Assembly: GCA_002269645.1 (NCBI GenBank)
Contig: NIVC01000778.1
Location: 124,001-188,000 of the forward strand
Direction: 5' to 3'
Origin: Macrostomum lignano
Taxonomy: Eukaryota
DNA length: 64,000 nucleotides
Every line of letters begins with the position of its first letter. The first letter of the stretch is position 1. Positions 13,701 through 46,002 of the stretch are shown here, in pieces. Below the pieces are notes generated by a model. It did not search any database. It saw only the letters and a list, made by a program, of their open reading frames with translations, and was not told the origin of the DNA. Both the position numbers and the translations under genes were made by a program.

Positions 13701-16700
13701 CAGGCTGAAATACGCCGCTCCACTTTCTCCACCGCACGACTCCATGTGACTTGCTGGGCAGCGGATCGAACAATCTTTCTCGATACTCAGCCTGTACGAG
13801 TCGTGGGGCAGTTCCGATGCACACAGGCAGCTGTCACCGAAGGCGAGGCTGAAGTATTTGAATTTCTTCAAGGCATTTTTCTTGCGACACTCGAAAGCGC
13901 AAACGCGGTGCGACATTTTTTCTTTATTTATTAGTTCCAGCTTTGCCATCGGATAGCCTTGGTATATTGAATAGCATCCTATGGGATCTCCTGCAACCGT
14001 TGGGGAAAAGTGGTCAAATGTTGCATGAAAAGCATTACATCAATATAGGAGCTTTTCTGACATGCTGAGGGAATTGTTCTGACATACTGAGGGAATTGAT
14101 CTGGTATGCTGGGGGAATTATTCTGGCATGCTGAGGGAATTGTTCTGGCATGCTGAGGGAACTGTTCTGACATGCTAAGGGAACTGTTCTGACATGCTAA
14201 GGGAACTGTTCTGACATGCTGGGGGAATTATTCTGGCATGCTGAGGGAACTGTTCTGGTATGCTGGGGGAATTAGTCTGGCATGCTGAGGGAACTGTTCT
14301 GACATGCTGGGGGAATTATTCTGACATGCTGAGGGAACTGTTCTGACATGCTGAGGGAACTGTTCTGATATGCTGAGGGAACTGTTCTGACATGCTGAGG
14401 GAACTGTTCTGACATGCTGAGGGAACTGTTCTGACATGCTGAGAGAACTGTTCTGATATGCTGAGGGAACTGTTCTGACATGCTGAGGGAACTGTTCTGA
14501 CATGCTGAGGGAACTGTTCTGACATGCAGTTCTCACTTGGATTTTGTGTGACGCTCTGCGCTCTGGGATCCGGAGTTGCCGGAACCGATTCGGGCTGGCC
14601 TGCGTGGTGCGGACGTTGCAGTGTGGTTATAATTACTTTTACTTTGAGCTGAAGAATATTATTCATAATTAAAACTTTGAATCTGTTCTCTCACTTTGTT
14701 TTTGCTGATCCGGAGTTGGCAGAATCGACTTGGACTGGTCTGAGTGGTGCGGAGGTTGAAGTGAGTTTGTAATTACTCGATACTAGCATGGATACTAGCA
14801 AGTTGAGTACATGCTTTAGAATGTAGGATTAAAAAGGAGCTGCAAATGTTTATCGTAAAAGCCGGAGCTGTCACCGAATACTTGCCTGGTTTTTGTCGAA
14901 TAAGATTGAAAAATGCCAATAAATCTTGATTTCCGCAAAATTCGAGTGATCCTTTTATACGAGGACACCTTCCTTTACAGTCACTGTCCGGATAAATATC
15001 CGAGTATTCTGGAAGCTCGGGTGCACAAACGCATTCTTTATCGTCGCGAATGAAAAAATATTTGTAATTGTCGTAAAGATCGACACTGATACACCTTTGA
15101 GCGCAAGTTTCAAATGGAATCCCTCTTCGAGTAGACACCACATCTGAATTTTCCATCATCATGTTCACAGCGCAGGCTGCCATCGATATGTTTTCTGAAA
15201 TGGTTAAAACTAATTAATTTAAGTAAGAGCAGCTTAAACAGCGGAAATATTCAGATGGAAACTTACCCGGTAAAATTGGAGTGACCCACGGTCCCTGCTC
15301 GTATGTATCTGAATAATATAAAATTTGAGAATATAAAATTTTTCGAGAAAGTTTGATCAAGCTGGGGTGATTTTAAGTGAACCGATACGGTGCTTCTGGC
15401 CAGTGAAATAAATCTAAGAAATGAACTCAAACATTTCGATGACCTTAACTGGATGAGAGTCATTGGAATGCCAGAAAAACTATTTTAGATTTTTATTTGA
15501 ATCGAAACACGCAGCTAACGAATTGTAGACTGCCGGGGAATCGTAGATAGCTGGGGAATTGTACACAGCTGGAGAATTGTAGACAGCGAGGGAATTGTAG
15601 ACTGCCGGGGAATTGTAGACAGCTGGGGAATTGTAGACAGCGAGGGAATTGTAGACAGCTAGGGAATTGTAGACAGCTAGGGAATTGTAGACAGCTAGGG
15701 AATTGTAGACAGCGAGGGAATTGTAGACTGCCGGGGAATCGTAGACAGCTGGAGAATTGTAGACAGCTAGGGAATTGTAGACTGTCGGGGAATCGTAGAC
15801 AGCTGGAGAATTGTAGACAGCTAGGGAATTGTAGACTGCCGGGGAATCGTAGACAGCTGGAGAATTGTAGACAGCTAGGGAATTGTAGACTGTCGGGGAA
15901 TCGTAGACAGCTGGAGAATTGTAGACAGCTAGGGAATTGTAGACTGCCGGGGAATCGTAGACAGCTGGAGAATTGTAGACAGCTAGGGAATTTTAGACAG
16001 CTATAAAAATGTAGACAGCGAGGGAATTGTAGACAGTTGGGGAATTGTAGCTGGGGAATTGACAACTGGGTAATTGTAGATAGCTGGGAATTGTAGATAG
16101 CTGGGTAGTTGTAGACAGCTGGAGAATTGTAGACAGCTAGGGAATTGTAGACTGCCGGGGAATCGTAGACTGCCGGGTAATCGTAGACAGCTGGGGAATT
16201 GTAGACAGCTGGGGAATTGTAGACAGCTATGAAAATGTAGACAGCGAGGGAATTGTAGACAGTTGGGGAATTGTAGCTGGGGAATTGACAGCTGGGTAAT
16301 TGAATATAGCTGGGAATTGTAGACTGCCGGGGAATCGTAGACAGCTGGGGAATTGTAGACAGCGGGAGAATTGTAGACAGCTGTGAAATTGTAGGCAGCT
16401 GTGGAATTGTAGACAGCTGGACATGAAGAGCATCTTTGGAAATTGTAAGCAGCTTGTGAAAAGCAGTTTCCATTCGAAACAGAAGCAGCTTATGCACAAG
16501 GAGTAATATGACAAAATTCTTGCCTTTTTTTGGAGGAACAGTTGTTGTGGTCAGGTTGAAATACGCTATCTTGTGGTCTCCCCCGCATGACTGATTGTGA
16601 TTTCCTGGGCACCGATACGAACAATAGGAATTTTTTGTTTTCTCCGTTAAAGTGGGTAATGTCGATGCACAGAAGCAAGTGTCGAAGTCGGTGATAGCGA

Positions 16701-19700
16701 AATATTTGAATTTTTTCCCGTAGAGATCACGCCTCACACACTCGGAGGCGCAAACAAGGTGCGACATCTCATTACTTTGCAACACCTTTGTCAAGTCATG
16801 TTGGTTATCGTAGCATTCCGGAAAAACTGAAGCTGAAAATGAAAATAAATAACGGTTGAGCACAAGTCCATGTGTATGAATAAGGTACAGTTGCGGGTAT
16901 ACTAAAATTATAATTATTTATGTGATGAGGCAGAAGACTAACGACCACCCAGAGACCGATGATAAACACAAGACGCTTGACTACAAAGAACTGAATGAGA
17001 TGCACGAGAGACAGAGCCGCTTGGATGGTGGAAAGATGACAATCAATGTAAGCAGACACAAAAACCCTTAAACATAGAATTTGACTGAAAGAATTCAGTA
17101 GTCACTCACCTGGAATAACCGGATAGACCTTCGCTCCCTGCTCGAATTTATCTGAAATGGTAAATTTGTACTTGGACTTTACTTGAGAACATCACTAATA
17201 TAAGCAGCCTTAGCTCTGTGTCAATCAATCTAATTACCTTTTCTCATAGAAGACAGTGTTGCGCTGACGCTAAAATAGGCTGCTGCATTCTCGCCACCGC
17301 ACGATTGCAGGTGATTTCCTGGGCAGCGATACGAACAATGGACTTCAGGGTTATCGACTATACTTGAGTTCCTAGGCAGTTCCGATGCACACAGGCAGTT
17401 GTCACCATTGGCGAGGCCGAAGTATTTGTATCTCTTTAAGGGACTTTTCCTGGCACACTCAAGAGCGCAAACGCGGTGCGACATTTTAATATTTTGCTTC
17501 ATTTCCAGTTTCACTTCATTATTCACTTTATTCGTTATGAGATAGCAGCCAATACCATTGAAAGATTGGACTGAAAATGTTGGGGACAATTAAACCAAAA
17601 CTGAGCAGGGTTTGATGATAGCGATTTGCATCAGCTACAGGGTACATGCGAGCAATTAAGTATAAGATCTGCTAATGCAAAACTGTCATGACATGGACAA
17701 GGAAATGTTTTGACATGCTGAAGAAAATGCATCTGTTTCAAACTGGGATAATTTATGACATGAAGACAATTGAAATGGTTTGATAGTGTCAGTTTATATA
17801 CCAGCTTAATGACACTAATGAAGCAAGAAATACTGAGGAAACTGTTCTGACATACTGAGGAAACTTTTCTGACACACTGAGCTGATTTTGCAGTCTAAAA
17901 TCAACGCTGCAGCCGGGGTAAGTAAAAAAATTGTAATTCAACTCAAAATCTGACTGGTGTCTCACCTGGATCTTCCGGAGCGCTTTTGCCATTCAAAGTC
18001 TCCTGGCTACTTGGAGCTGCACTTGTCCCAGCTGAAAAGTGGCAGTTATATCTTGAATGCAGCTGAGCATGAGCACAAGCTAAAGTGCAAAGTATTTTGG
18101 AGTGAATGTTTGTACACAATTTGGAAAACGGTAGATAGTTGGGATGATTGTAGACAGTTGGGGAATTGTAGACAGCTGGGGAATTGTAGACACCTGAGGA
18201 ATTGTAGACAGCACAGCAATTAGAAAACAGGTGGGGAATTGTAGACAGAAGGGCAATTAAAGACAGGTAGGAAATTGTAGAGAGCATGGCAATTACAGAC
18301 GCGGCTGGGGAAATTGTAGACAGCTGGAAAATTGTAGACATCAGGCAATAGAATAGAATAGAAGACAGCTGGGGAGTTGTAGACAGCTGGGGAATTGTAG
18401 AGAGCTGGGGAATTGTAGAGAGCTGGAGAAATCGTTGACAGCTGGGGAATTGTAGAGAGCTGGAGAAATCGTAGACAGCTGGGGAATTGTAGAGATCTGG
18501 AGAAATCGTAGACAGCTGGGAAATTGTAGAGAGCTGGAGAAATCGTAGACAGCTGGGGAATTGTAGAGAGCTGGAGAAATCGTAGACAGCTGGGGAATTG
18601 TAGAGATCTGGAGAAATCGTAGACAGCTGGGGAATTGTAGAGAGCTGGGGGAATTGTACACAGCTGGGGAATTGTAGAGAGCTGGAGAAATCGTAGACAG
18701 CTTGGGAATTGTAGAGATCTGGAGAAATCGTAGACAGCTGGGGAATTGTAGAGATCTGGAGAAATCGTAGACAGCTGGGGAATTGTAGAGAGCTGGAGAA
18801 ATCGTAGACAGCTGGGGAATTGTAGAGATCTGGAGAAATCGTAGACAGCTGGGGAATTGTAGAGAGCTGGGGGAATTGTACACAGCTGGGGAATTGTAGA
18901 GAGCTGGAGAAATCGTAGACAGCTTGGGAATTGTAGAGATCTGGAGAAATCGTAGACAGCTGGGGAATTGTAGAGATCTGGAGAAATCGTAGACAGCTGG
19001 GGAATTGTAGAGAGCTGGAGAAATCGTAGACAGCTGGGGAATTGTAGAGATCTGGAGAAATCGTAGACAGCTGGGGAATTGTAGAGAGCTGGAGAAATCG
19101 TAGACAGCTGGGGAATTGTAGAGAGCTGGAGAAATCGTTGACAGCTGGGGAATTGTAGAGAGCTGGAGAAATCGTTGACAGCTGGGGAATTGTAGAGATC
19201 TGGAGAAATCGTAGACAGCTGGGGAATTGTAGAGAGCTGGAGAAATCGTAGACAGCTGGGGAATTGTAGAGATCTGGAGAAATCGTAGACAGCTGGGGAA
19301 TTGTAGAGAGCTGGGGGAATTGTACACAGCTGGGGAAATTTAGACAGCAGGGCATTGTAGACGCAGGAGATGATCCGTATCTCGCTAAAACTACAGGATC
19401 TTTTATGACACAAAGGCAAGATAAGTGATTTGATAATGACAGATCAAAGACCAGGGTGAAGTTACTCTACTGAAGTAAGAAATTTGTAATTCAACTCAAA
19501 ATCTGACTGGTGTCTCACCTGGATCTTCCAAAGTGGTTTTGACTTTCGAAGTGTCCTGGCTAGTCGGAGCTGCATTTGTCCCAGCTGAAAAGTGGCAGTT
19601 ATATCTTGAATGCAGCTGAGCATGAGCACAAGCTAAAGTGCAAAGTATTTTGGAGTGAATGTTTGTACACATATTGGGGAACAGTAGAAAGTTGGGGGGA

Positions 19701-22700
19701 TAGTAGACAGTTGAGGAATTGTAAACAGCTGGTGAATTTTAAACAGCAAGGCAATTAAATACAGATGGGGGATTGTAAACAGCTTTAATAATTGTAGACA
19801 GCTGGGAAACTGTAGAGAGGTGGGGAATTGTAGACAGCTGGGCAATTAAAGACGGCTGGGGAAATGTAGACAGCAGGGCAATTAAAGACGGCTGGGGAAA
19901 TGTAGACAGCAGGGCAATTAAAGACGGCTGGGGAAATGTAGACAGCAAAGCAATTAAAGACAGGTGGGGAATTTTGGACAGCTGGGGAATTTTAGACAGC
20001 TGGGGAATTTTAGACAGCTGGGGAATTGCAGACAGCTGGGAAATTGTAGAGAGGTGGGGAATTGTAGACAGCTGGGCAATTAAAGACGGCTGGGGAAATG
20101 TAGACAGCAGGGCAATTAAAGACGGCTGGGGAAATGTAGACAGCAGGGCAATTAAAGACGGCTGGGGAAATGTAGACAGCAGGGCAATTAAAGACGGCTG
20201 GGGAAATGTAGACAGCAGGGCAATTAAAGACGGCTGGGGAAATGTAGACAGCAGGGCAATTAAAGACGGCTGGGGAAATGTAGACAGCAGGGCAATTAAA
20301 GACAGGTGGGGAATTTTAGACAGCTGGGGAATTTTAGACAGCTGGGGAATTTTAGACAGCTTGGGAATTTTAGACAGCTGGGGAATTGCAGACAGCTGGG
20401 AAATTGTAGACAGGATGGCAATTAAAGACAGCTGGGAAATTGTAGACAGCTGGGGAATTTTAGACAGCTGGGGAATTGTAGACAGGATGGCAATTAAAGA
20501 CAGCTGGGAAATTGTAGACAGCTGGGGAATTTTAGACAGCTGGGGAATTGCAGACAGCTGGGAAATTGTAGACAGGATGGCAATTAAAGACAGCTGGGAA
20601 ATTGTAGACAGCAGGTCAATTAAAGACAGCTGGAAAATTGTAGACAGCAGGGCAATTAAAGACAGCTGGGAAATTGTAGACAGCTGGGGAATTGCAGACA
20701 GCTGGGAAGTTGTAGACAGGATGGCAATTAAAGACAGGTGGGAAATTGTAGACAGCTAGGGAATTTTAGACAGGTGGGAAATTGTAGACAGCAGGTCAAT
20801 TAAAGACAGCTGGGGAATTGTACACAGCTGGGGAATTGTAGAGAGTTAGAGAAATCGTAGACAGCTAGAGAATTGTAGAGAGCTGGGGAATCGTAGACAG
20901 GTGGGGAATTGTAAACAGCTGGAAAATTGTAGACAGAAGAGCAATTAAAAACAGGTGGGGAATTGTAGACAGAAGGGCAATTAAAGACAGCAAAGAAATT
21001 GTAGACAGCAGGCAATAGAAGACAGCTGGGGAATTGTAGACAGCTGGAAAATTGTAGACAGCTAGGGAATTGTAGACAGGTGGGAAATTGTAGACAGCAG
21101 GTCAATTAAAGACAGGTAGGAAATTGTAGAGAGCATGGCAATTAAAGACGCGGCTGGGGAAATTGTAGACAGCAGAGTAATTAAAGGCAGGTAGGAAATT
21201 GTAGAGAGCATGGCAATTAAAGACGCGGCTGGGGATATTGTAGACAGCAGAGTAATTAAAGACAGCGGGGCATTTGAAGACAGCTGGGAAATTGTAGACA
21301 GCTGGGGAGTTGTAGACAGCTGGGGAATTGTAGAGAGCTGGAGAAATCGTTGACAGCTGGGGAATTGTAGAGATCTGGAGAAATCGTAGACAGCTGGGGA
21401 ATTGTAGAGAGCTGGGGGAATTGTAGAGAGCTGGAGAAATCGTAGACAGCTGGGGAATTGTAGAGAGCTGGGGGAATTGTACACAGCTGGGGAAATTTAG
21501 ACAGCAGGGCATTGTAGACGCAGGAGATGATCCGTATCTCGCTAAAACTACAGGATCTTTTATGACACAAAGGCAAGATAAGTGATTTGATAATGACAGA
21601 TCAAAGACCAGGGTGAAGTTACTCTACTGAAGTAAGAAATTTGTAATTCAACTCAAAATCTGACTGGTGTCTCACCTGGATCTTCCAAAGTGGTTTTGAC
21701 TTTCGAAGTCTCCTGGCTAGTCGGAGCTGCATTTGTCCCAGCTGAAAAGTGGCAGTTATATCTTGAATGCAGATTAGCATGAGCACAAACTAAAGTGCAA
21801 AGTATTTTGGAGTGAATGTTTGTACACATATTGGGGAACAGTAGAAAGTTGGAGGGATTGTAGACAGTTGGGGAATTGTAGACAGCTGGTGAATTTTAAA
21901 CAGCAAGGCAATTAAAGACAGATGGGGGATTGTAAACAGCTTTAATAATTGTAGACAGCTGGGAAACTGTAGAGAGGTGGGGAATTGTAGACAGCTGGGC
22001 AATTAAAGACGGCTGGGGAAATGTAGACAGCAGGGCAATTAAAGACGGCTGGGGAAATGTAGACAGCAGGGCAATTAAAGACGGCTGGGGAAATGTAGAC
22101 AGCAGGGCAATTAAAGACGGCTGGGGAAATGTAGACAGCAGGGCAATTAAAGACGGCTGGGGAAATGTAGACAGCAGGGCAATTAAAGACGGCTGGGGAA
22201 ATGTAGACAGCAGGGCAATTAAAGACGGCTGGGGAAATGTAGACAGCAGGGCAATTAAAGACGGCTGGGGAAATGTAGACAGCAGGGCAATTAAAGACAG
22301 GTGGGGAATTTTAGACAGCTGGGGAATTTTAGACAGCTTGGGAATTTTAGACAGCTGGGGAATTGCAGACAGCTGGGAAATTGTAGACAGGATGGCAATT
22401 AAAGACAGCTGGGAAATTGTAGACAGCTGGGGAATTTTAGACAGCTGGGGAATTGTAGACAGGATGGCAATTAAAGACAGCTGGGAAATTGTAGACAGCT
22501 GGGGAATTTTAGACAGCTGGGGAATTGCAGACAGCTGGGAAATTGTAGACAGGATGGCAATTAAAGACAGCTGGGAAATTGTAGACAGCAGGTCAATTAA
22601 AGACAGCTGGAAAATTGTAGACAGCAGGGAAATTAAAGACAGCTGGGAAATTGTAGACAGCTGGGGAATTGCAGACAGCTGGGAAGTTGTAGACAGGATG

Positions 22701-25700
22701 GCAATTAAAGACAGGTGGGAAATTGTAGACAGCAGGTCAATTAAAGACAGCTGGGGACTTGTAGACAGCAGGGCAATTAAAGACAGGTGGGAAATTGTGG
22801 ACAGCTGGAAAATTGTAGACAGCTAGGGAATTGTAGACAGGTGGGAAATTGTAGACAGCAGGTCAATTAAAGACAGCTGGGGAATTGTACACAGCTGGGG
22901 AATTGTAGAGAGTTAGAGAAATCGTAGACAGCTAGAGAATTGTAGAGAGCTGGGGAATCGTAGACAGGTGGGGAATTGTAAACAGCTGGAAAATTGTAGA
23001 CAGAAGAGCAATTAAAAACAGGTGGGGAATTGTAGACAGAAGGGCAATTAAAGACAGCAAAGAAATTGTAGACAGCAGGCAATAGAAGACAGCTGGGGAA
23101 TTGTAGACAGCTGGAAAATTGTAGACAGCTAGGGAATTGTAGACAGGTGGGAAATTGTAGACAGCAGGTCAATTAAAGACAGGTAGGAAATTGTAGAGAG
23201 CATGGCAATTAAAGACGCGGCTGGGGAAATTGTAGACAGCAGAGTAATTAAAGGCAGGTAGGAAATTGTAGAGAGCATGGCAATTAAAGACGCGGCTGGG
23301 GATATTGTAGACAGCAGAGTAATTAAAGACAGCGGGGCATTTGAAGACAGCTGGGAAATTGTAGACAGCTGGGGAGTTGTAGACAGCTGGGGAATTGTAG
23401 AGAGCTGGAGAAATCGTTGACAGCTGGGGAATTGTAGAGATCTGGAGAAATCGTAGACAGCTGGGGAATTGTAGACAGCTGGGGAATTGTAGAGAGCTGG
23501 AGAAATCGTAGACAGCTGGGGAATTGTAGAGAGCTGGAGAAATCGTAGACAGCTGGGGAATTGTAGAGAGCTGGGGGAATTGTACACAGCTGGGGAAATT
23601 TAGACAGCAGGGCATTGTAGACGCAGGAGATGATCCGTATCTCGCTAAAACTACAGGATCTATTATGACACAAAGGCAAGATAAGTGATTTGATAATGAC
23701 AGATCAAAGACCAGGGTGAAGTTACTCTACTGAAGTAAGAAATTTGTAATTCAACTCAAAATCTAACTGGTGTCTCACCTGGATCTTCCAAAGTGGTTTT
23801 GACTTTCGAAGTGTCCTGGCTAGTCGGAGCTGCATTTGTCCCAGCTGAAAAGTGGCAGTTATATCTTGAATGCAGCTGAGCATGAGCACAAGCTAAAGTG
23901 CAAAGTATTTTGGAGTGAATGTTTGTACACATATTGGGGAACAGTAGAAAGTTGGGGGGATTGTAGACAGTTGGGGAATTGTAAACAGCTGGTGAATTTT
24001 AAACAGCAGGCCAGTTTAAGACAAGTGGAGAAATGTAGACAGCAGGGCAATTAAAGACGGCTGGGGAAATGTAGACAGCAGGGCAATTAAAGACGGCTGG
24101 GGAAATGTAGACAGCAGGGCAATTAAAGAGGGCTGGGGAAATGTAGACAGCAGGGCAATTAAAGAGGGCTGGGGAAATGTAGACAGCAGGGCAATTAAAG
24201 ACGGCTGGGGAAATGTAGACAGCAGGGCAATTAAAGACGGCTGGGGAAATGTAGACAGCAGGGCAATTAAAGACGGCTGGGGAAATGTAGACAGCAGGGC
24301 AATTAAAGACAGGTGGGGAATTTTAGACAGCTGGGGAATTTTAGACAGCTTGGGAATTTTAGACAGCTGGGGAATTTTAGACAGCTGGGGAATTGCAGAC
24401 AGCTGGGAAATTGTAGAGAGGTGGGGAATTGTAGACAGCTGGGCAATTAAAGACGGCTGGGGAAATGTAGACAGCAGGGCAATTAAAGACGGCTGGGGAA
24501 ATGTAGACAGCAGGGCAATTAAAGACGGCTGGGGAAATGTAGACAGCAGGGCAATTAAAGACGGCTGGGGAAATGTAGACAGCAGGGCAATTAAAGACGG
24601 CTGGGGAAATGTAGACAGCAGGGCAATTAAAGACGGCTGGGGAAATGTAGACAGCAGGGCAATTAAAGACGGCTGGGGAAATGTAGACAGCAGGGCAATT
24701 AAAGACGGCTGGGGAAATGTAGACAGCAGGGCAATTAAAGACAGGTGGGGAATTTTAGACAGCTGGGGAATTTTAGACAGCTTGGGAATTTTAGACAGCT
24801 GGGGAATTGCAGACAGCTGGGAAATTGTAGACAGGATGGCAATTAAAGACAGCTGGGAAATTGTAGACAGCTGGGGAATTTTAGACAGCTGGGGAATTGT
24901 AGACAGGATGGCAATTAAAGACAGCTGGGAAATTGTAGACAGCTGGGGAATTTTAGACAGCTGGGGAATTGCAGACAGCTGGGAAATTGTAGACAGGATG
25001 GCAATTAAAGACAGCTGGGAAATTGTAGACAGCAGGTCAATTAAAGACAGCTGGAAAATTGTAGACAGCAGGGAAATTAAAGACAGCTGGGAAATTGTAG
25101 ACAGCTGGGGAATTGCAGACAGCTGGGAAGTTGTAGACAGGATGGCAATTAAAGACAGGTGGGAAATTGTAGACAGCAGGTCAATTAAAGACAGCTGGGG
25201 ACTTGTAGACAGCAGGGCAATTAAAGACAGGTGGGAAATTGTGGACAGCTGGAAAATTGTAGACAGCTAGGGAATTGTAGACAGGTGGGAAATTGTAGAC
25301 AGCAGGTCAATTAAAGACAGCTGGGGAATTGTACACAGCTGGGGAATTGTAGAGAGTTAGAGAAATCGTAGACAGCTAGAGAATTGTAGAGAGCTGGGGA
25401 ATCGTAGACAGGTGGGGAATTGTAAACAGCTGGAAAATTGTAGACAGAAGAGCAATTAAAAACAGGTGGGGAATTGTAGACAGAAGGGCAATTAAAGACA
25501 GCAAAGAAATTGTAGACAGCAGGCAATAGAAGACAGCTGGGGAATTGTAGACAGCTGGAAAATTGTAGACAGCTAGGGAATTGTAGACAGGTGGGAAATT
25601 GTAGACAGCAGGTCAATTAAAGACAGGTAGGAAATTGTAGAGAGCATGGCAATTAAAGACGCGGCTGGGGAAATTGTAGACAGCAGAGTAATTAAAGGCA

Positions 25701-28700
25701 GGTAGGAAATTGTAGAGAGCATGGCAATTAAAGACGCGGCTGGGGATATTGTAGACAGCAGAGTAATTAAAGACAGCGGGGCATTTGAAGACAGCTGGGA
25801 AATTGTAGACAGCTGGGGAGTTGTAGACAGCTGGGGAATTGTAGAGAGCTGGAGAAATCGTTGACAGCTGGGGAATTGTAGAGATCTGGAGAAATCGTAG
25901 ACAGCTGGGGAATTGTAGAGAGCTGGGGGAATTGTAGAGAGCTGGAGAAATCGTAGACAGCTGGGGAATTGTAGAGAGCTGGAGAAATCGTAGACAGCTG
26001 GGGAATTGTAGAGAGCTGGGGGAATTGTACACAGCTGGGGAAATTTAGACAGCAGGGCATTGTAGACGCAGGAGATGATCCGTATCTCGCTAAAACTACA
26101 GGATCTATTATGACACAAAGGCAAGATAAGTGATTTGATAATGACAGATCAAAGACCAGGGTGAAGTTACTCTACTGAAGTAAGAAATTTGTAATTCAAC
26201 TCAAAATCTAACTGGTGTCTCACCTGGATCTTCCAAAGTGGTTTTGACTTTCGAAGTGTCCTGGCTAGTCGGAGCTGCATTTGTCCCAGCTGAAAAGTGG
26301 CAGTTATATCTTGAATGCAGCTGAGCATGAGCACAAGCTAAAGTGCAAAGTATTTTGGAGTGAATGTTTGTACACATATTGGGGAACAGTAGAAAGTTGG
26401 GGGGATTGTAGACAGTTGGGGAATTGTAAACAGCTGGTGAATTTTAAACAGCAGGCCAGTTTAAGACAAGTGGAGAAATGTAGACAGCAGGGCAATTAAA
26501 GACGGCTGGGGAAATGTAGACAGCAGGGCAATTAAAGACGGCTGGGGAAATGTAGACAGCAGGGCAATTAAAGAGGGCTGGGGAAATGTAGACAGCAGGG
26601 CAATTAAAGAGGGCTGGGGAAATGTAGACAGCAGGGCAATTAAAGACGGCTGGGGAAATGTAGACAGCAGGGCAATTAAAGACGGCTGGGGAATTTCAGA
26701 CAGCTGGGGAATTTTAGACAGCTGGGGAATTTTAGACAGCTGGGGAATTGCAGACAGCTGGGAAATTGTAGACAGGATGGCAATTAAAGACAGCTGGTAA
26801 ATTGTAGACAGCAGGTCAATTAAAGACAGCTGGGGACTTGTAGACAGCACGGCAATTAAAGACAGCTGGGAAATTGTAGACAGCTGGGGAATTGCAGACA
26901 GCTGGGAAATTGTAGACAGGATGGCAATTAAAGTCAGCTGGGAAATTGTGGACAGCTGGAAAATTGTAGACAGCTGGTCAATTAAAGACAGCTGGGGAAT
27001 TGTAGACAGCTGGGGAGTTGTAGACAGCTGGGGAATTGTAGAGAGTTAGAGAAATCGTAGACAGCTAGAGAATTGTAGAGAGCTGGGGAATCGTAGACAG
27101 GTGGGGAATTGTAAACAGCTGGAAAATTGTAGACAGCAGAGCAATTAAAAACAGGTGGAGAAATGTAGACAGAAGGGCAATTAAAGACAGCAAAGAAATT
27201 GTAGACAGCTGGGGAATTGTAGACAGCTGGAAAATTGTAGACAGCTAGGGAATTTTAGACAGGTGGGAAATTGTAGACAGCTGGAAAATTGTAGACAGCT
27301 AGGGAATTGTAGACAGGTAGGAAATTGTAGAGAGCATGGCAATTAAAGACGCGGTTGGGGAAATTATAGACAGCAGAGTAATTAAAGACAGCAGAGCATT
27401 TGAAGACAGCTGGAAAATTGTAGACAGCTGGGGAGTTGTAGACAGCTGGGGAATTGTAGAGAGCTGGAGAAATCGTTGACAGCTGGGGAATTGTAGAGAT
27501 CTGGAGAAATCGTAGACAGCTGGGGAATTGTAGAGAGCTGGGGGAATTGTAGAGAGCTGGAGAAATTGTAGACAGCTGGGGAATTGTAGAGAGCTGGAGA
27601 AATCGTAGACAGCTGGGGAATTGTAGAGAGCTGGGGGAATTGTACACAGCTGGGGAAATTTAGACAGCAGGGCATTGTAGACGCAGGAGATGATCCGTAT
27701 CTCGCTAAAACTACAGGATCTTTTATGACACAAAGGCAAGATAAGTGATTTGATAATGACAGATCAAAGACCAGGGTGAAGTTACTCTACTGAAGTAAGA
27801 AATTTGTAATTCAACTCAAAATCTAACTGGTTTCTCACCTGGATCTTCCAAAGTGGTTTTGACTTTCGAAGTGTCCTGGCTAGTCGGAGCTGCATTTGTC
27901 CCAGCTGAAAAGTGGCAGTTATATCTTGAATGCAGCTGAGCATGAGCACAAGCTAAAGTGCAAAGTATTTTGGAGTGAATGTTTGTACACAATTTGGGGA
28001 ACAGTAGAAAGTTGGGGGGATTGTAGACAGTTGGGGAATTGTAAACAGCTGGTGAATTTTAAACAGCAAGGCAGTTTAAGACAAGTGGAGAAATGTAGAC
28101 AGCAGGGCAATTAAAGACGGCTGGGGAAATGTAGACAGCAGGGCAATTAAAGACGGCTGGGGAAATGTAGACAGCAGGGCAATTAAAGACGGCTGGGGAA
28201 ATGTAGACAGCAGGGCAATTAAAGACGGCTGGGGAAATGTAGACAGCAGGGCAATTAAAGACGGCTGGGGAAATGTAGACAGCAGGGCAATTAAAGACGG
28301 CTGGGGAAATGTAGACAGCAGGGCAATTAAAGACAGGTGGGGAATTTTAGACAGCTGGGGAATTTTAGACAGCTGGGGAATTTTAGACAGCTTGGGAATT
28401 TTAGACAGCTGGGGAATTGCAGACAGCTGGGAAATTGTAGACAGGATGGCAATTAAAGACAGCTGGGAAATTGTAGACAGCTGGGGAATTTTAGACAGCT
28501 GGGGAATTGTAGACAGGATGGCAATTAAAGACAGCTGGGAAATTGTAGACAGCTGGGGAATTTTAGACAGCTGGGGAATTGCAGACAGCTGGGAAATTGT
28601 AGACAGGATGGCAATTAAAGACAGCTGGGAAATTGTAGACAGCAGGTCAATTAAAGACAGCTGGAAAATTGTAGACAGCAGGGCAATTAAAGACAGCTGG

Positions 28701-31700
28701 GAAATTGTAGACAGCTGGGGAATTGCAGACAGCTGGGAAGTTGTAGACAGGATGGCAATTAAAGACAGGTGGGAAATTGTAGACAGCAGGGCAATTAAAG
28801 ACAGCTGGGAAATTGTAGACAGCTGGGAAATTGTAGACAGCTGGGGAATTGCAGACAGCTGGGAAGTTGTAGACAGGATGGCAATTAAAGACAGGTGGGA
28901 AATTGTAGACAGCAGGTCAATTAAAGACAGCTGGGGACTTGTAGACAGCAGGTCAATTTAAGACAGCTGGGGAATTGTACACAGCTGGGGAATTGTAGAG
29001 AGTTAGAGAAATCGTAGACAGCTAGAGAATTGTAGAGAGCTGGGGAATCGTAGACAGGTGGGGAATTGTAAACAGCTGGAAAATTGTAGACAGAAGAGCA
29101 ATTAAAAACAGGTGGGGAATTGTAGACAGAAGGGCAATTAAAGACAGCAAAGAAATTGTAGACAGCAGGCAATAGAAGACAGCTGGGGAATTGTAGACAG
29201 CTGGAAAATTGTAGACAGCTAGGGAATTGTAGACAGGTGGGAAATTGTAGACAGCAGGTCAATTAAAGACAGGTAGGAAATTGTAGAGAGCATGGCAATT
29301 AAAGACGCGGCTGGGGAAATTGTAGACAGCAGAGTAATTAAAGGCAGGTAGGAAATTGTAGAGAGCATGGCAATTAAAGACGCGGCTGGGGATATTGTAG
29401 ACAGCAGAGTAATTAAAGACAGCGGGGCATTTGAAGACAGCTGGGAAATTGTAGACAGCTGGGGAGTTGTAGACAGCTGGGGAATTGTAGAGAGCTGGAG
29501 AAATCGTTGACAGCTGGGGAATTGTAGAGATCTGGAGAAATCGTAGACAGCTGGGGAATTGTAGAGAGCTGGAGAAATCGTAGACAGCTGGGGAATTGTA
29601 GAGAGCTGGGGGAATTGTACACAGCTGGGGAAATTTAGACAGCAGGGCATTGTAGACGCAGGAGATGATCCGTATCTCGCTAAAACTACAGGATCTTTTA
29701 TGACACAAAGGCAAGATAAGTGATTTGATAATGACAGATCAAAGACCAGGGTGAAGTTACTCTACTGAAGTAAGAAATTTGTAATTCAACTCAAAATCTA
29801 ACTGGTTTCTCACCTGGATCTTCCAAAGTGGTTTTGACTTTCGAAGTGTCCTGGCTAGTCGGAGCTGCATTTGTCCCAGCTGAAAAGTGGCAGTTATATC
29901 TTGAATGCAGCTGAGCATGAGCACAAGCTAAAGTGCAAAGTATTTTGGAGTGAATGTTTGTACACAATTTGGGGAACAGTAGAAAGTTGGGGGGATTGTA
30001 GACAGTTGGGGAATTGTAAACAGCTGGTGAATTTTAAACAGCAAGGCAGTTTAAGACAAGTGGAGAAATGTAGACAGCAGGGCAATTAAAGACGGCTGGG
30101 GAAATGTAGACAGCAGGGCAATTAAAGACGGCTGGGGAAATGTAGACAGCAGGGCAATTAAAGACGGCTGGGGAAATGTAGACAGCAGGGCAATTAAAGA
30201 CGGCTGGGGAAATGTAGACAGCAGGGCAATTAAAGACGGCTGGGGAAATGTAGACAGCAGGGCAATTAAAGACGGCTGGGGAAATGTAGACAGCAGGGCA
30301 ATTAAAGACAGGTGGGGAATTTTAGACAGCTGGGGAATTTTAGACAGCTGGGGAATTTTAGACAGCTTGGGAATTTTAGACAGCTGGGGAATTGCAGACA
30401 GCTGGGAAATTGTAGACAGGATGGCAATTAAAGACAGCTGGGAAATTGTAGACAGCTGGGGAATTTTAGACAGCTGGGGAATTGTAGACAGGATGGCAAT
30501 TAAAGACAGCTGGGAAATTGTAGACAGCTGGGGAATTTTAGACAGCTGGGGAATTGCAGACAGCTGGGAAATTGTAGACAGGATGGCAATTAAAGACAGC
30601 TGGGAAATTGTAGACAGCAGGTCAATTAAAGACAGCTGGAAAATTGTAGACAGCAGGGCAATTAAAGACAGCTGGGAAATTGTAGACAGCTGGGGAATTG
30701 CAGACAGCTGGGAAGTTGTAGACAGGATGGCAATTAAAGACAGGTGGGAAATTGTAGACAGCAGGTCAATTTAAGACAGCTGGGGAATTGTACACAGCTG
30801 GGGAATTGTAGAGAGTTAGAGAAATCGTAGACAGCTAGAGAATTGTAGAGAGCTGGGGAATCGTAGACAGGTGGGGAATTGTAAACAGCTGGAAAATTGT
30901 AGACAGAAGAGCAATTAAAAACAGGTGGGGAATTGTAGACAGAAGGGCAATTAAAGACAGCAAAGAAATTGTAGACAGCAGGCAATAGAAGACAGCTGGG
31001 GAATTGTAGACAGCTGGAAAATTGTAGACAGCTAGGGAATTGTAGACAGGTGGGAAATTGTAGACAGCAGGTCAATTAAAGACAGGTAGGAAATTGTAGA
31101 GAGCATGGCAATTAAAGACGCGGCTGGGGAAATTGTAGACAGCAGAGTAATTAAAGGCAGGTAGGAAATTGTAGAGAGCATGGCAATTAAAGACGCGGCT
31201 GGGGATATTGTAGACAGCAGAGTAATTAAAGACAGCGGGGCATTTGAAGACAGCTGGGAAATTGTAGACAGCTGGGGAGTTGTAGACAGCTGGGGAATTG
31301 TAGAGAGCTGGAGAAATCGTTGACAGCTGGGGAATTGTAGAGATCTGGAGAAATCGTAGACAGCTGGGGAATTGTAGAGAGCTGGGGGAATTGTAGAGAG
31401 CTGGAGAAATCGTAGACAGCTGGGGAATTGTAGAGAGCTGGAGAAATCGTAGACAGCTGGGGAATTGTAGAGAGCTGGGGGAATTGTACACAGCTGGGGA
31501 AATTTAGACAGCAGGGCATTGTAGACGCAGGAGATGATCCGTATCTCGCTAAAACTACAGGATCTATTATGACACAAAGGCAAGATAAGTGATTTGATAA
31601 TGACAGATCAAAGACCAGGGTGAAGTTACTCTACTGAAGTAAGAAATTTGTAATTCAACTCAAAATCTAACTGGTGTCTCACCTGGATCTTCCAAAGTGG

Positions 31701-34700
31701 TTTTGACTTTCGAAGTGTCCTGGCTAGTCGGAGCTGCATTTGTCCCAGCTGAAAAGTGGCAGTTATATCTTGAATGCAGCTGAGCATGAGCACAAGCTAA
31801 AGTGCAAAGTATTTTGGAGTGAATGTTTGTACACATATTGGGGAACAGTAGAAAGTTGGGGGGATTGTAGACAGTTGGGGAATTGTAAACAGCTGGTGAA
31901 TTTTAAACAGCAGGGCAGTTTAAGACAAGTGGAGAAATGTAGACAGCAGGGCAATTAAAGACGGCTGGGGAAATGTAGACAGCAGGGCAATTAAAGACGG
32001 CTGGGGAAATGTAAACAGCAGGGCAATTAAAGAGGGCTGGGGAAATGTAGACAGCAGGGCAATTAAAGAGGGCTGGGGAAATGTAGACAGCAGGGCAATT
32101 AAAGACGGCTGGGGAAATGTAGACAGCAGGGCAATTAAAGACGGGTGGGGAATTTCAGACAGCTGGGGAATTTTAGACAGCTGGGGAATTGCAGACAGCT
32201 GGGGAATTGCAGACAGCTGGGAAATTGTAGACAGGATGGCAATTAAAGTCAGCTGGGAAATTGTGGACAGCTGGAAAATTGTAGACAGCAGGGCAATTAA
32301 AGACAGGTGGGGAATTTTAGACAGCTGGGGAATTTTAGACAGCTGGGGAATTTTAGACAGCTGGGGAATTGCAGACAGCTGGGAAATTGTAGACAGGATG
32401 GCAATTAAAGACAGCTGGGAAATTGTAGACAGCAGGTCAATTAAAGACAGCTGGGGACTTGTAGACAGCACGGCAATTAAAGACAGCTGGGAAATTGTAG
32501 ACAGCTGGGGAATTGCAGACAGCTGGGAAATTGTAGACAGGATGGCAATTAAAGTCAGCTGGGAAATTGTGGACAGCTGGAAAATTGTAGACAGCTGGTC
32601 AATTAAAGACAGCTGGGGAATTGTAGACAGCTGGGGAGTTGTAGACAGCTGGGGAATTGTAGAGAGTTAGAGAAATCGTAGACAGCTAGAGAATTGTAGA
32701 GAGCTGGGGAATCGTAGACAGGTGGGGAATTGTAGACAGCAGGTCAATTAAAGACAGCTGGGGAATTGTACACAGCTGGGGAATTGTAGAGAGTTAGAGA
32801 AATCGTAGACAGCTAGAGAATTGTAGAGAGCTGGGGAATCGTAGACAGGTGGGGAATTGTAAACAGCTGGAAAATTGTAGACAGCAGAGCAATTAAAAAC
32901 AGGTGGAGAAATGTAGACAGAAGGGCAATTAAAGACAGCAAAGAAATTGTAGACAGCTGGGGAATTGTAGACAGCTGGAAAATTGTAGACAGCTAGGGAA
33001 TTGTAGACAGGTAGGAAATTGTAGAGAGCATGGCAATTAAAGACGCGGTTGGGGAAATTATAGACAGCAGAGTAATTAAAGACAGCAGAGCATTTGAAGA
33101 CAGCTGGAAAATTGTAGACAGCTGGGGAGTTGTAGACAGCTGGGGAATTGTAGAGAGCTGGAGAAATCGTTGACAGCTGGGGAATTGTAGAGAGCTGGAG
33201 AAATCGTAGACAGCTGGGGAATTGTAGAGATCTGGAGAAATCGTAGACAGCTGGGGAATTGTAGAGAGCTGGGGGAATTGTACACAGCTGGGGAAATTTA
33301 GACAGCAGGGCATTGTAGACGCAGGAGATGATCCGTATCTCGCTAAAACTACAGGATCTTTTATGACACAAAGGCAAGATAAGTGATTTGATAATGACAG
33401 ATCAAAGACCAGGGTGAAGTTACTCTACTGAAGTAAGAAATTTGTAATTCAACTCAAAATCTAACTGGTTTCTCACCTGGATCTTCCAAAGTGGTTTTGA
33501 CTTTCGAAGTGTCCTGGCTAGTCGGAGCTGCATTTGTCCCAGCTGAAAAGTGGCAGTTATATCTTGAATGCAGCTGAGCATGAGCACAAGCTAAAGTGCA
33601 AAGTATTTTGGAGTGAATGTTTGTACACAATTTGGGGAACAGTAGAAAGTTGGGGGGATTGTAGACAGTTGGGGAATTGTAAACAGCTGGTGAATTTTAA
33701 ACAGCAAGGCAGTTTAAGACAAGTGGAGAAATGTAGACAGCAGGGCAATTAAAGACGGCTGGGGAAATGTAGACAGCAGGGCAATTAAAGACGGCTGGGG
33801 AAATGTAGACAGCAGGGCAATTAAAGACGGCTGGGGAAATGTAGACAGCAGGGCAATTAAAGACGGCTGGGGAAATGTAGACAGCAGGGCAATTAAAGAC
33901 GGCTGGGGAAATGTAGACAGCAGGGCAATTAAAGACGGCTGGGGAAATGTAGACAGCAGGGCAATTAAAGACAGGTGGGGAATTTTAGACAGCTGGGGAA
34001 TTTTAGACAGCTGGGGAATTTTAGACAGCTTGGGAATTTTAGACAGCTGGGGAATTGCAGACAGCTGGGAAATTGTAGACAGGATGGCAATTAAAGACAG
34101 CTGGGAAATTGTAGACAGCTGGGGAATTTTAGACAGCTGGGGAATTGTAGACAGGATGGCAATTAAAGACAGCTGGGAAATTGTAGACAGCTGGGGAATT
34201 TTAGACAGCTGGGGAATTGCAGACAGCTGGGAAATTGTAGACAGGATGGCAATTAAAGACAGCTGGGAAATTGTAGACAGCAGGTCAATTAAAGACAGCT
34301 GGAAAATTGTAGACAGCAGGGCAATTAAAGACAGCTGGGAAATTGTAGACAGCTGGGGAATTGCAGACAGCTGGGAAGTTGTAGACAGGATGGCAATTAA
34401 AGACAGGTGGGAAATTGTAGACAGCAGGTCAATTAAAGACAGCTGGGGACTTGTAGACAGCAGGTCAATTTAAGACAGCTGGGGAATTGTACACAGCTGG
34501 GGAATTGTAGAGAGTTAGAGAAATCGTAGACAGCTAGAGAATTGTAGAGAGCTGGGGAATCGTAGACAGGTGGGGAATTGTAAACAGCTGGAAAATTGTA
34601 GACAGAAGAGCAATTAAAAACAGGTGGGGAATTGTAGACAGAAGGGCAATTAAAGACAGCAAAGAAATTGTAGACAGCAGGCAATAGAAGACAGCTGGGG

Positions 34701-37700
34701 AATTGTAGACAGCTGGAAAATTGTAGACAGCTAGGGAATTGTAGACAGGTGGGAAATTGTAGACAGCAGGTCAATTAAAGACAGGTAGGAAATTGTAGAG
34801 AGCATGGCAATTAAAGACGCGGCTGGGGAAATTGTAGACAGCAGAGTAATTAAAGGCAGGTAGGAAATTGTAGAGAGCATGGCAATTAAAGACGCGGCTG
34901 GGGATATTGTAGACAGCTGGGGAATTGTAGAGAGCTGGAAAAATCGTTGACAGCTAGGGAATTGTAGAGATCTGGAGAAATCGTAGACAGCTGGGGAATT
35001 GTAGAGAGCTGGGGGAATTGTAGAGAGCTGGAGAAATCGTAGACAGCTGGGGAATTGTAGAGATCTGGAGAAATCGTAGACAGCTGGGGAATTGTAGAGA
35101 GCTGGGGGAATTGTACACAGCTGGGGAAATTTAGACAGCAGGGCATTGTAGACGCAGGAGATGATCCGTATCTCGCTAAAACTACAGGATCTATTATGAC
35201 ACAAAGGCAAGATAAGTGATTTGATAATGACAGATCAAAGACCAGGGTGAAGTTACTCTACTGAAGTAAGAAATTTGTAATTCAACTCAAAATCTAACTG
35301 GTGTCTCACCTGGATCTTCCAAAGTGGTTTTGACTTTCGAAGTCTCCTGGCTAGTCGGAGCTGCATTTGTCCCAGCTGAAAAGTGGCAGTTATATCTTGA
35401 ATGCAGCTGAGCATGAGCACAAGCTAAAGTGCAAAGTATTTTGGAGTGAATGTTTGTACACAATTTGGGGAACAGTAGAAAGTTGGGGGGATTGTAGACA
35501 GTTGGGGAATTGTAAACAGCTGGTGAATTTTAAACAGCAGGGCAGTTTAAGACAAGTGGAGAAATGTAGACAGCAGGGCAATTAAAGACGGCTGGGGAAA
35601 TGTAGACAGCAGGGCAATTAAAGAGGGCTGGGGAAATGTAGACAGCAGGGCAATTAAAGAGGGCTGGGGAAATGTAGACAGCAGGGCAATTAAAGAGGGC
35701 TGGGGAAATGTAGACAGCAGGGCAATTAAAGACGGCTGGGGAAATGTAGACAGCAGGGCAATTAAAGAGGGCTGGGGAAATGTAGACAGCAGGGCAATTA
35801 AAGAGGGCTGGGGAAATGTAGACAGCAGGGCAATTAAAGACAGGTGGGGAATTTTAGACAGCTGGGGAATTTTAGACAGCTGGGGAATTTTAGACAGCTG
35901 GGGAATTGCAGACAGCTGGGAAATTGTAGACAGGATGGCAATTAAAGACAGCTGGGAAATTGTAGACAGCAGGTCAATTAAAGACAGCTGGGGACTTGTA
36001 GACAGCACGGCAATTAAAGACAGCTGGGAAATTGTAGACAGCTGGGGAATTGCAGACAGCTGGGAAATTGTAGACAGGATGGCAATTAAAGTCAGCTGGG
36101 AAATTGTGGACAGCTGGAAAATTGTAGACAGCTAGGGAATTGTAGACAGGTGGGAAATTGTAGACAGCTGGGGAATTGTAGACAGCTGGGGAATTGTAGA
36201 GAGTTAGAGAAATCGTAGACAGCTAGAGAATTGTAGAGAGCTGGGGAATCGTAGACAGGTGGGGAATTGTAAACAGCTGGAAAATTGTAGACAGCAGAGC
36301 GATTAAAAACAGGTGGGGAATTGTAGACAGAAGGGCAATTAAAGACAGCAAAGAAATTGTAGACAGCAGGCAATAGAAGACAGCTGGGGAATTGTAGACA
36401 GCTGGAAAATTGTAGACAGCTAGGGAATTGTAGACAGGTGGGAAATTGTAGACTGCTGGGGAATTGTAGACAGCAGGTCAATTAAAGACAGGTAGGAAAT
36501 TGTAGAGAGCATGGCAATTAAAGACCCGGCTGGGGAAATTGTAGACAGCAGAGTAATTAAAGACAGCTAAGAAATTAAAGACAGCGGGGCATTTGAAGAC
36601 AGCTGGGAAATTGTAGACAGCTGGGGAGTTGTAGACAGCTGGGGAATTGTAGAGAGCTGGAGAAATCGTTGACAGCTGGGGAATTGTAGAGATCTGGAGA
36701 AATCGTAGACAGCTGGGGAATTGTAGAGAGCTGGGGGAATTGTAGAGAGCTGGAGAAATCGTTGACAGCTGGGGAATTGTAGAGAGCTGGAGAAATCGTA
36801 GACAGCTGGGGAATTGTAGAGAGCTGGGGGAATTGTAGAGAGCTGGAGAAATCGTAGACAGCTGGGGAATTGTAGAGAGCTGGAGAAATCGTAGACAGCT
36901 GGGGAATTGTAGAGAGCTGGGGGAATTGTACACAGCTGGGGAAATTTAGACAGCAGGGCATTGTAGACGCAGGAGATGATCCGTATCTCGCTAAAACTAC
37001 AGGATCTATTATGACACAAAGGCAAGATAAGTGATTTGATAATGACAAATCACAGACCAGGGTGAAGTTACTCTACTGAAGTAAGAAATTTGTAATTCAA
37101 CTCAAAATCTAACTGGTTTCTCACCTGGATCTTCCAAAGTGGTTTTGACTTTCGAAGTGTCCTGGCTAGTCGGAGCTGCATTTGTCCCAGCTGAAAAGTG
37201 GCAGTTATATCTTGAATGCAGCTGAGCATGAGCACAAGCTAAAGTGCAAAGTATTTTGGAGTGAATGTTTGTACACATATTGGGGAACAGTAGAAAGTTG
37301 GGGGGGATAGTAGACAGTTGGGGAATTGTAGACAGCTGGTGAATTTTAATCAGCAAGGCAATTAAAGACAGATGGGGGATAGTAAACAGCTTTAAGAATT
37401 GTAGACAGCTGGGAAACTGTAGAGAGGTGGGGAATTGTGGACAGCAGGGCAATTAAAGACAGCTTGGGAATTGTAGACAGCTTGGGGAATTGTAGACATT
37501 TGGGGAACTGTAGACATTTGGGAGAATTGTAGACAGCTGGGGAATTGTAGACAGCTAGGGAATTGTAGACAGCTGGGGAATTGTAAACAGTTTGGGAAAT
37601 TTAGACAGCTAGGGAATTGTAAACTGTTTGGGAATTATAGACATGTTAATATGCTGAGGGAACTGTTCTGATATGATGAGAGTACTTTTTGACATGCTGA

Positions 37701-39384: not shown

Positions 39385-39992
39385 GTTTGCTTGAAGGAAT
39401 TTTGTTTGCGGAAATTTGCTTGCCGAACTTTGCTTGCAGGAATTTTGCTTGCCGGAATTTTGCTTGCCGAACTTTACTTGCAGGAACTTTGCTTGCCGAA
39501 CTTTGCTTGTCAAACTTTGCTTGAAGGAATTTTGCTTGCCGAACTTTGCTTGCAGGAATTTTGCTTGCAGGAATTTTGCTTGCAGGAATTTTGCTTGCAG
39601 GAATTTTGCTTGCAGGAATTTTGCTTGCCGAACTTTGCTTGCCGAACTTTGCTTGCCGGAATTTCGCTTGCAGGAATTTTGCTTGCAGGACTTTGCTTGC
39701 CGAACTTTGCTTGCAGGAATTTTGCTTGCCGAACTTTGCTTGCAGGAATTTGCTTGCCGAACTTTGCTTGCAGAACTTTGCTTGCAGGAATTTGCTTGCA
39801 GAACTTTGCTTGCCGAACTTTGCTTGCAGGAACTTTGCTTGCCGAACTTTGCTTGCCGAACTTTGCTTGCCGAACTTTGCTTGTCGAACTTTGCTTGCAG
39901 GAACTTTGCTTGCGGAATTTCGCCTGCCGAAGTTTGCTTGCCGAGCTTTGCTTGCCGAAGTTTGCTTGCCGAGCTTTGCTTGCAGGAATTTT
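39385..39992 (+). repeat. 14/15-bp minisatellite TTTGCTTGCCGAAC / TTTTGCTTGCAGGAA
   Basis: About 42 mixed units; the same unit recurs inverted at 40378-40672. Confidence 0.95.
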
Positions 39993-40377
39993 GATGTCTG
40001 CTTCCAAGAAATTCGCAATCACAACTGCAAGGTTTTAACTTGCCGAATTATTTTCTTGTTTGTTTGCGTTGGTATCCTTGGGTAGGAGTCATGATATGTA
40101 GCAGTTCACAGATCGGTGGTACATGTACATTCATCTGCAAAATATCTATTCTGTACATTTCGTTGCCTAGATCATTCGATATGTGCATTGTTCCAATTGT
40201 GTCCAATTTTTGTTGAAAATGTGTATTCCCATTAAAAAACTAAATTTTTCCATTTCTGCATCAGGGCTTTTCAAATCCGACATATCCTCATACAAAATCA
40301 AAACACTATAGGCGACTTCCACGAATCTTAGAAAATTTTAGAAATCTTAGAATCTTAGAACGAGGCTGGAAAACCTC

Positions 40378-45969: not shown

Positions 45970-46002
45970 AGCAACGGGTCCCTAAGAACCAAGACAATAC
46001 TA

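Follow-up and report, generated by a model that had tools for sequence, protein, structure and literature searches.

A head-to-tail exon-plus-intron array of 66-nt mini-exons in a WSC-domain gene of Macrostomum lignano

The window analysed here, a stretch of 64,000 nucleotides from Macrostomum lignano (assembly GCA_002269645.1, contig NIVC01000778.1, positions 124,001 to 188,000 of the forward strand), harbours on its minus strand a gene of about 28 kb (from about 38227 to 10383) in which eleven mini-exons form a tandem array with minisatellite-rich introns. Read from 5' to 3', a signal-peptide exon is followed by two related 84-nt exons and the eleven mini-exons, after which eight WSC-domain exons alternate with linker exons of 42 nt. 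The gene model consists of 32 exons joined by hand, its acceptors being AG and its donors GT or GC (the latter in the conserved form CAG/gcaagt; a slash within a motif marks the splice boundary). All internal exons of this model are phase 1-1, and a single open frame of 1298 amino acids (aa) runs to a stop codon at about 10383, with AATAAA motifs beyond it. This frame is open both with and without the two 84-nt exons.

With regard to the WSC part of the gene, the Pfam profile PF01822 matched eight stretches of the model (E 2.7e-75, 249 bits compared to a gathering cut-off of 27.8), and single WSC exons gave E values from 4e-14 to 1e-6. The UniProt protein A0A1I8GVD0 of M. lignano (P0002) was recovered as exact peptide blocks on the window exons from 17149 to 10386, except for a few residues at block junctions, and the remaining matches of the protein search were all M. 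lignano WSC proteins. The N-terminus encoded by exon 1 is common to the paralogue proteins P0001, P0003 and P0004, and none of the NCBI-sourced proteins among the search matches equals the N-terminus of the window gene. No transmembrane exon was found in the window gene. Based on the hydrophobic N-terminal leader and the extracellular WSC domains, the product is predicted to be secreted, with a low-complexity spacer preceding its eight carbohydrate-binding WSC domains.

The array is built on a 66-nt unit, CTGGGACAAATGCAGCTCCGACTAGCCAGGA(C/G)ACTTCGAAAGTCAAAACCACTTTGGAAGATCCAG, which occurs ten times on the minus strand, each time between gccacttttcag on the 5' side and gtgaga(a/c)acc on the 3' side. 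Together with a diverged copy, there are eleven exon-like units arranged head to tail, and in each the exon is complete and flanked by its two splice sites (ttttcag/CTGGG...CCAG/gtgaga); eleven identical 66-mers cannot have arisen by chance. Each exon is composed of CT, 21 codons and G and thus both begins and ends in phase 1. Apart from a single GAC/GAG (D/E) site, with the E variant in copies 2 and 9, ten copies do not differ, whereas copy 11 shows 11 substitutions (10 non-synonymous, 1 synonymous; peptide AGTSAAPSSQETLNGKSAPEDP), with frame, length and both splice sites kept. From copy 1 to copy 11, the spacings are 1815, 1833, 1794, 1869, 1975, 1615, 2445, 2103, 2157 and 1553 bp. An earlier note, made from the sequence alone, had described eleven 66-nt phase-1 exons with intact splice sites at intervals of 1553-2445 bp, each in a non-satellite cassette of about 340 bp, with ten copies differing by at most one codon and the last one diverged. 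All of these features were recovered, every exon exactly where it had been placed, and we add that all elements of the array are read on the minus strand, which had been left unstated. The copy number was read from one assembly of M. lignano. Coordinates are compiled in Table 1.

Table 1. Exons of the WSC-domain gene, mini-exon copies and associated repeats in the window, in the direction of the gene.
Feature	Position	Strand	Remarks
Exon 1	38146..38227	-	ATG 38227; MFRTVLLLFCMSAAIYGALSCPSSKKK; hydrophobic, signal-peptide-like N-terminus; phase-1 donor AAAT/gtgagt
190-bp tandem duplication	37755..38129	-	2 copies, 98%; carries two type-A mini-exons
Type-A mini-exons	38057-37974, 37867-37784	-	84 nt; SEPDAAPETKEDPPKDRSDWPSENQFHP; acceptor flank conserved; candidate exons
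Degenerate 18-bp minisatellite	37280..37643	-	before first cassette; old 5' edge of array
Mini-exon copy 1	37125..37190	-	66 nt, phase 1-1, AGTNAAPTSQDTSKVKTTLEDP
Mini-exon copy 2	35310..35375	-	E variant (GAG)
Mini-exon copy 3	33477..33542	-	
Mini-exon copy 4	31683..31748	-	
Mini-exon copy 5	29814..29879	-	
Mini-exon copy 6	27839..27904	-	
Mini-exon copy 7	26224..26289	-	
Mini-exon copy 8	23779..23844	-	
Mini-exon copy 9	21676..21741	-	E variant
Mini-exon copy 10	19519..19584	-	
Mini-exon copy 11	17966..18031	-	diverged; intronic flanks almost unchanged
Cassette (example)	35160..35500	-	decayed 18-mers, conserved acceptor flank, exon, about 150 nt of unique intron
Tandem Repeats Finder (TRF) call	18147..36968	-	single 18-bp array, 1028 copies, 66% matches
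WSC exon 1	17238..17570	-	phase 1-1; acceptor takes G of last mini-exon
Linker exon	17110..17151	-	42 nt; DKFEQGAKVYPVIP
WSC exon 2	16524..16832	-	GC-AG intron after it
Further linker exons	15267-15308, 13540-13581, 12656-12697, 11760-11801, 10870-10911	-	DKFEQGAKVYPVIP-like
WSC exon 3	14886..15194	-	
Internal-spacer mini-exons	14739-14695, 14599-14537	-	45 nt and 63 nt; then 22-bp minisatellite intron 14048-14527
WSC exons 4-8	13990-13673, 13418-13101, 12524-12216, 11629-11321, 10738-10383	-	last one includes stop codon

Each mini-exon lies in a non-satellite cassette of about 341 bp. Among the ten copies this cassette shows 97.6-100% identity, and its first 237 nt match those of the eleventh copy at 92%. 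What remains of each unit consists of an 18-bp minisatellite (sense strand CTGTCTACAATTCCCCAG), which in one intron tested resolved into 81 monomers at 71% matches, or into 36-bp dimers at 83%. The single TRF call really represents ten minisatellite introns of 1.2-2.1 kb split by cassettes, and it takes in nine of the eleven mini-exons (m2-m10). The same minisatellite is also present in the intron after WSC exon 2 (15520-16420), and no 18-mer array was found downstream of copy 11. The identity of the units (96-99.8%) compared to that of the monomers (71%) corresponds to the hierarchy of a satellite higher-order repeat; however, the array is not a strict one, because each unit holds a unique 341-bp cassette with an exon, a sequence which is probably coding. 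Long open reading frames (ORFs) through the minisatellite (e.g., 17943-19355, 470 aa) were discarded as mechanical, since the sense-strand 18-mer consensus is free of stop codons in all frames. Similarly, a structured intronic RNA element in the cassette was dropped, given that its RNA fold was no better than that of shuffled sequences (z = -0.08).

The array is placed between the phase-1 donor of the signal-peptide exon and the phase-1 acceptor of WSC exon 1, and with 66-nt exons of phase 1-1 the frame is therefore kept at any copy number. The reading that we consider probable is that the array encodes the N-terminal spacer of a secreted eight-WSC protein, and that this spacer has grown by amplification of an exon-plus-intron unit. 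Each extra copy would insert 22 aa in frame, since the exons of the gene are all phase 1-1. After its signal peptide and ahead of its first WSC domain, the product would carry a disordered spacer of up to 242 aa (11 copies of 22 aa), or of 298 aa if the two 84-nt exons are included.

Homologous exons are spliced in a paralogue, BOX15_Mlig000913g3 (P0001; locus L001 of GCA_002269645.1), whose underlying annotation relies on RNA-seq data together with a de novo transcriptome (PMC5730564). This gene consists of a signal-peptide exon, five phase 1-1 mini-exons of about 66-90 nt and then a WSC/linker series. Most of its mini-exons, of both A and B types, have the ctgccacttttcag acceptor, the donors being gtgaga, gtagga or gtaaga, and every cassette match at L001 that spans the exon coincides with an annotated exon. 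A literature search on the identifier BOX15_Mlig000913g3 found nothing. At the locus of paralogue P0004 (L002) no cassette was found, and this locus is thus uninformative on exon skipping. From these homologies and the splice signals kept in the old copy 11, we infer that the window copies are spliced into mRNA; consecutive copies, if spliced, would yield the tryptic peptide TTLEDPAGTNAAPTSQ(D/E)TSK, which crosses the exon-exon junction and exists nowhere in the unspliced genome. The two type-A mini-exons of the window gene have lost the ancestral AG/gtgaga donor together with about 50 nt of intron, the next in-frame phase-1 donor (CCCTG/gtctgt) lying five codons further on, and their use in splicing is uncertain.

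The diverged copy was compared with its neighbour, copy 10, both within and around the exon. Only 2 of 105 flank positions (60 nt upstream plus 45 nt downstream) differ, in contrast to 11 of 66 in the exon (Fisher p = 0.0006), that is, 1.9% in the adjacent intron and 16.7% in the exon core. This suggests that in copy 11 the splice flanks have been constrained while the peptide has been free, or pushed, to change. Between copy 10 and the type-A exon of the paralogue, identity was 88% upstream and 68% in the exon (p = 0.076). As a general rule, faster change of exon cores than of flanks was rejected, being significant in only one of seven comparisons.

Several observations weigh against the favoured reading. 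Firstly, neither the repeat nor its EDP/AGT junction is present in any protein among 5.8 billion, and the same holds for transcript-derived sequence. Secondly, variable sites amount to 1 of 66 in the exon, 12 of 275 in the cassette flanks and 45 of 1012 in the satellite, the difference between exon and flanks not being significant; purifying selection on the ten copies was therefore set aside, as their conservation is no evidence of selection when the intronic flanks are equally invariant. Furthermore, intact splice sites and an open frame in ten copies are uninformative because these copies are young, and the old copy, with 10 non-synonymous changes and 1 synonymous, gives no sign of purifying selection on the peptide. 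Lastly, only one assembly underlies the copy number, and the genome is known to be hard to assemble (PMC5730564).

Among the alternatives, the one that survives best is compatible with the spliced spacer that we favour, and we regard it as possible, although not as the expected outcome: the mini-exons may be alternative cassette exons which provide graded spacer lengths from one gene, their conserved intronic flanks being splicing-regulatory elements. The exons are symmetrical and their lengths multiples of three, the intron flanks are conserved as much as the exon or more in the two comparisons given above (copy 11 with copy 10, and copy 10 with type A), and conserved flanking introns are well known to typify mammalian alternative cassette exons. 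However, significance was reached in one comparison only, the RNA structure of the cassette is ordinary by the z value given above, and an Rfam scan of 9000-39500 yielded zero family matches.

It is less likely that the copies are silent pseudo-exons. The array would then be the repeat-rich filling of a long first intron, with the signal-peptide exon joined either to copy 11 or directly to WSC exon 1, and it would be neutral and leave the protein unaffected. The absence of the repeat from all protein and transcript-derived sequences searched fits this view, as do the youth of the copies, which explains their intactness without selection, the lack of purifying selection on the old peptide, and a frame that survives skipping of any or all copies. 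Against it, all eleven copies keep a strong acceptor (polypyrimidine tract plus cag) and the AG/gtgaga donor, the homologous cassettes are spliced in the paralogue, and the contrast between flanks and exon in the old copy suggests selection for exon recognition.

With respect to the origin of the array, in-register identity over whole units, satellite included, is 96-99.8% among U1-U9 and about 87% for U10, beside copy 11; indels between units are mostly multiples of 18 bp, or off by a base or so. Thirty-two informative sites divide the units into two classes (U1, U3 and U6 vs. U2, U4, U5, U7, U8 and U9), which are interleaved along the array and include some mosaic members. The most diverged parts are the 5' satellite edge and the 3' edge (S10 plus copy 11). 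As read from the sequence, in-register identity, mosaics and older edges form the classical signature of units that evolve in concert by unequal exchange or gene conversion, and we infer exchange, rather than replication slippage, as the mechanism.

The ancestral cassette would have had the conserved acceptor flank, a 66-nt phase 1-1 exon for a 22-aa S/T/P-rich peptide and the donor flank, in an intron already filled with the 18-bp minisatellite. That such an intron predates the amplification is indicated by paralogue L001, whose homologous introns contain both the 18-mer and the 22-mer minisatellite. The exon-plus-intron unit of 1.6-2.4 kb would then have been amplified head to tail as misaligned units underwent unequal homologous exchange or gene conversion, leaving ten young copies (96-99.8% identical) beside one old copy. 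Later gain and loss of whole 18-bp monomers in the minisatellites would account for the unequal lengths of the units.

The earlier note had attributed the expansion to satellite-driven unequal exchange. Exchange or gene conversion is supported by the mosaics and older edges. The role given to the satellite is not supported, since each unit matches the others in register along its full 1.6-2.4 kb and this homology is enough to explain exchange. We therefore think it improbable that the 18-bp satellite was the recombination substrate which created and expanded the array, the exon being a mere passenger. The satellite does flank every internal cassette on both sides, unit boundaries fall inside it, and length changes are mostly of whole monomers or nearly so. 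However, in-register exchange of units is favoured over misalignment of monomers, because the units match across the satellite at 96-99.8% and the monomers are only about 71% alike; besides, the same satellite lies in other introns (that after WSC exon 2, and those of the paralogue) without exon amplification, and it forms no array downstream of copy 11.

An assembly artefact is unlikely. In that case the true number of units would be lower or higher, haplotypes or homeologues of a polyploid, repeat-rich genome having been expanded, collapsed or merged during assembly. In the DV1 genome of M. lignano, chromosomes are duplicated, simple or tandem repeats make up 15% and the assembly is substantially redundant (PMC5730564), and the interleaved alpha and beta unit classes could reflect two merged haplotypes; nevertheless, each unit is distinct in length, with private substitutions and private indel patterns, and simple over-expansion would give identical copies instead of an ordered structure with old edges. 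A polyprotein precursor releasing identical peptides was rejected, because no dibasic or other obvious cleavage site lies beside the repeat.

The spacer turns over quickly within the family, as three gene copies that are 94-96% identical in WSC1 plus linker have N-terminal parts of 325, 146 and 96 aa. Tandem duplication of WSC blocks occurs in the family as well, in the four-unit array of about 890 bp in the window gene and in P0006, with three identical WSC-plus-linker repeats. A broader proposal, which we hold only as a speculative one, is that of a family-wide engine in which minisatellite-filled introns and cassettes with conserved splice flanks would drive rapid gain and loss of spacer exons, the exon core evolving faster than the flanks under diversifying selection and the length being polymorphic and functionally tuned, e.g., in sexual conflict.

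Within the limits of a single assembly, the array is a real structure and probably another case of the known exon-intron coding tandem repeats, such as LPA kringle IV type 2 (KIV-2) and DMBT1. In LPA, as is well established, a multi-kb head-to-tail unit likewise holds complete exons plus intron, in frame and in near-identical copies; copy number sets protein length, and the region is hard for short-read assembly and annotation, as here. The LPA unit differs in its size of 5.5 kb, its two exons, its folded kringle domain and its non-minisatellite intron, and polymorphism and expression are documented for LPA, whereas the window array is known from one assembly. DMBT1 (salivary agglutinin, with SRCR and SID exons; PMC4851238 and established knowledge) is a secreted glycoprotein which likewise has symmetrical-phase exons and small S/T/P-rich spacer exons; unequal recombination adds and removes blocks of exons in its tandem array, with copy-number variation. 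Its block is a domain exon plus a spacer exon, unlike the young window array of a spacer exon alone, and the older array of about 890-bp WSC-plus-linker units is the closer analogue.

Other systems are alike in part. The proline-threonine-serine (PTS) or variable number tandem repeat (VNTR) domains of mucins such as MUC1 are, as established, tandem S/T/P-rich repeats behind a signal peptide whose length changes by unequal exchange; however, mucin VNTRs lie inside one large exon, whereas here each 22-aa repeat is its own exon with an intron of 1.5-2.4 kb. The hierarchy of monomers (about 71%), 36-bp dimers (83%) and units (96-99.8%), with more diverged edge units, resembles that known for alpha-satellite-type higher-order repeats, from which the array differs in its 341-bp unique cassette with an exon and in being intragenic and presumably transcribed. 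A Dscam-type mutually exclusive cluster needs alternative exons that differ in sequence, and the ten window copies encode the same peptide; as to the conserved intronic RNA pairing elements (docking and selector sites) of such clusters, the cassette has a conserved acceptor flank and its RNA folds no better than shuffles (z = -0.08), no docking-site search having been made. The paralogues P0001 and P0003 (A0A1I8J9K8) share with the window gene the signal-peptide exon, the cassette flanks, the WSC/linker series (94-96% in WSC1 plus linker) and the intronic minisatellites. They have 5 and 3 mutually diverged mini-exons and introns of 0.2-1.1 kb, in contrast to the 2 + 11 mini-exons, ten of them near-identical, and the 1.5-2.4-kb introns of the window gene.

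The repeat contains S or T at 7 of 22 positions and P at 2 of 22, and its S+T+P content of 41% is borderline for a mucin-like PTS domain and at the low end for mucins. Of the mucin-like spacer of about 240 aa proposed earlier, the length agrees with that predicted here (242 aa of S/T/P-rich spacer), and a mucin-like, O-glycosylated stalk is plausible from the composition of the repeat. The expectation that standard masking would erase the exons proved reasonable, as TRF merges 18147-36968 into one array and the GenBank annotation of Mlig_3_7 excluded transcripts overlapping the repeat annotation (PMC5730564). Because that array covers m2-m10, such transcripts were excluded and the peptide is in no database entry, all catalogues may lack up to about 300 aa of a secreted protein.

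The locus represents a clean, datable case of a spacer growing exon by exon, with a young centre, old edges, mosaics and paralogues with 3, 5 and 13 mini-exons. WSC-domain proteins of M. lignano include prostate and seminal-fluid candidates (PMC6953679, PMC4490696). Membership of the window gene among the latter is only a lead; were it one of them, the fast-changing length of its spacer would be of interest for the evolution of reproductive proteins.

Additional observations concern the WSC exons and their introns. The last four pairs of a 42-nt linker exon and a WSC exon of about 309-318 nt form an older coding tandem array (10101-13581, minus strand) of four units of about 890 bp, 64-92% identical. 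GC-starting introns (CAG/gcaagt) follow five WSC exons (16522-16523, 14884-14885, 13099-13100, 12214-12215 and 11319-11320, minus strand), and the transcript-based paralogue model has the same GC donor (L001, about 13926). WSC exons 2 and 5 have paired AG acceptors 6 nt apart (ttttag/CTTCAG/; 16826 and 16832, 13412 and 13418, minus strand), and two database models of paralogues differ by exactly the residues AS, present or absent, matching such a 6-nt pair. A 22-bp minisatellite (CAGCATGTCAGAACAGTTCCCT) fills other introns of the family, at 14048-14527 in the window and at 10360-10958, 11778-12320 and 15994-16342 in L001; it adjoins the conserved acceptor element, which it loosely resembles, and the UniProt model P0007 reads through it as protein.

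Outside the gene, two inverted 14-bp minisatellite arrays about 400 bp apart (39386-39983 and 40376-40672) lie 1-2 kb upstream of the start codon and constitute a large potential foldback, and a 28-bp minisatellite (AGGCTGGCCCAGCAACTGAGGATCTGGG) flanks the WSC gene on both sides in the same orientation (5567-6953 and 41607-42221). The coding region of a Ty3/gypsy-type long terminal repeat (LTR) retroelement, with zinc knuckle, aspartyl protease, reverse transcriptase, RNase H and integrase, is located at 42495-46100 (plus strand) and is probably degraded, since it is split over several ORFs. An ISY1-like splicing-factor gene with three exon-sized ORFs follows at 47612-50130 (minus strand), one intron holding a 21-bp minisatellite (48110-48838). 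A C-terminal exon of phosphoglucomutase-1 was found at 62957-63505 (minus strand; Pfam PF24947, E 6e-39), its ORF continuing into a 22-bp minisatellite (63336-64000). At the other end of the window, on the strand opposite to the WSC gene, Sushi/CCP-domain exons of another gene are present at 58-2734 (plus strand), with a 24-bp minisatellite between them (1147-2405).

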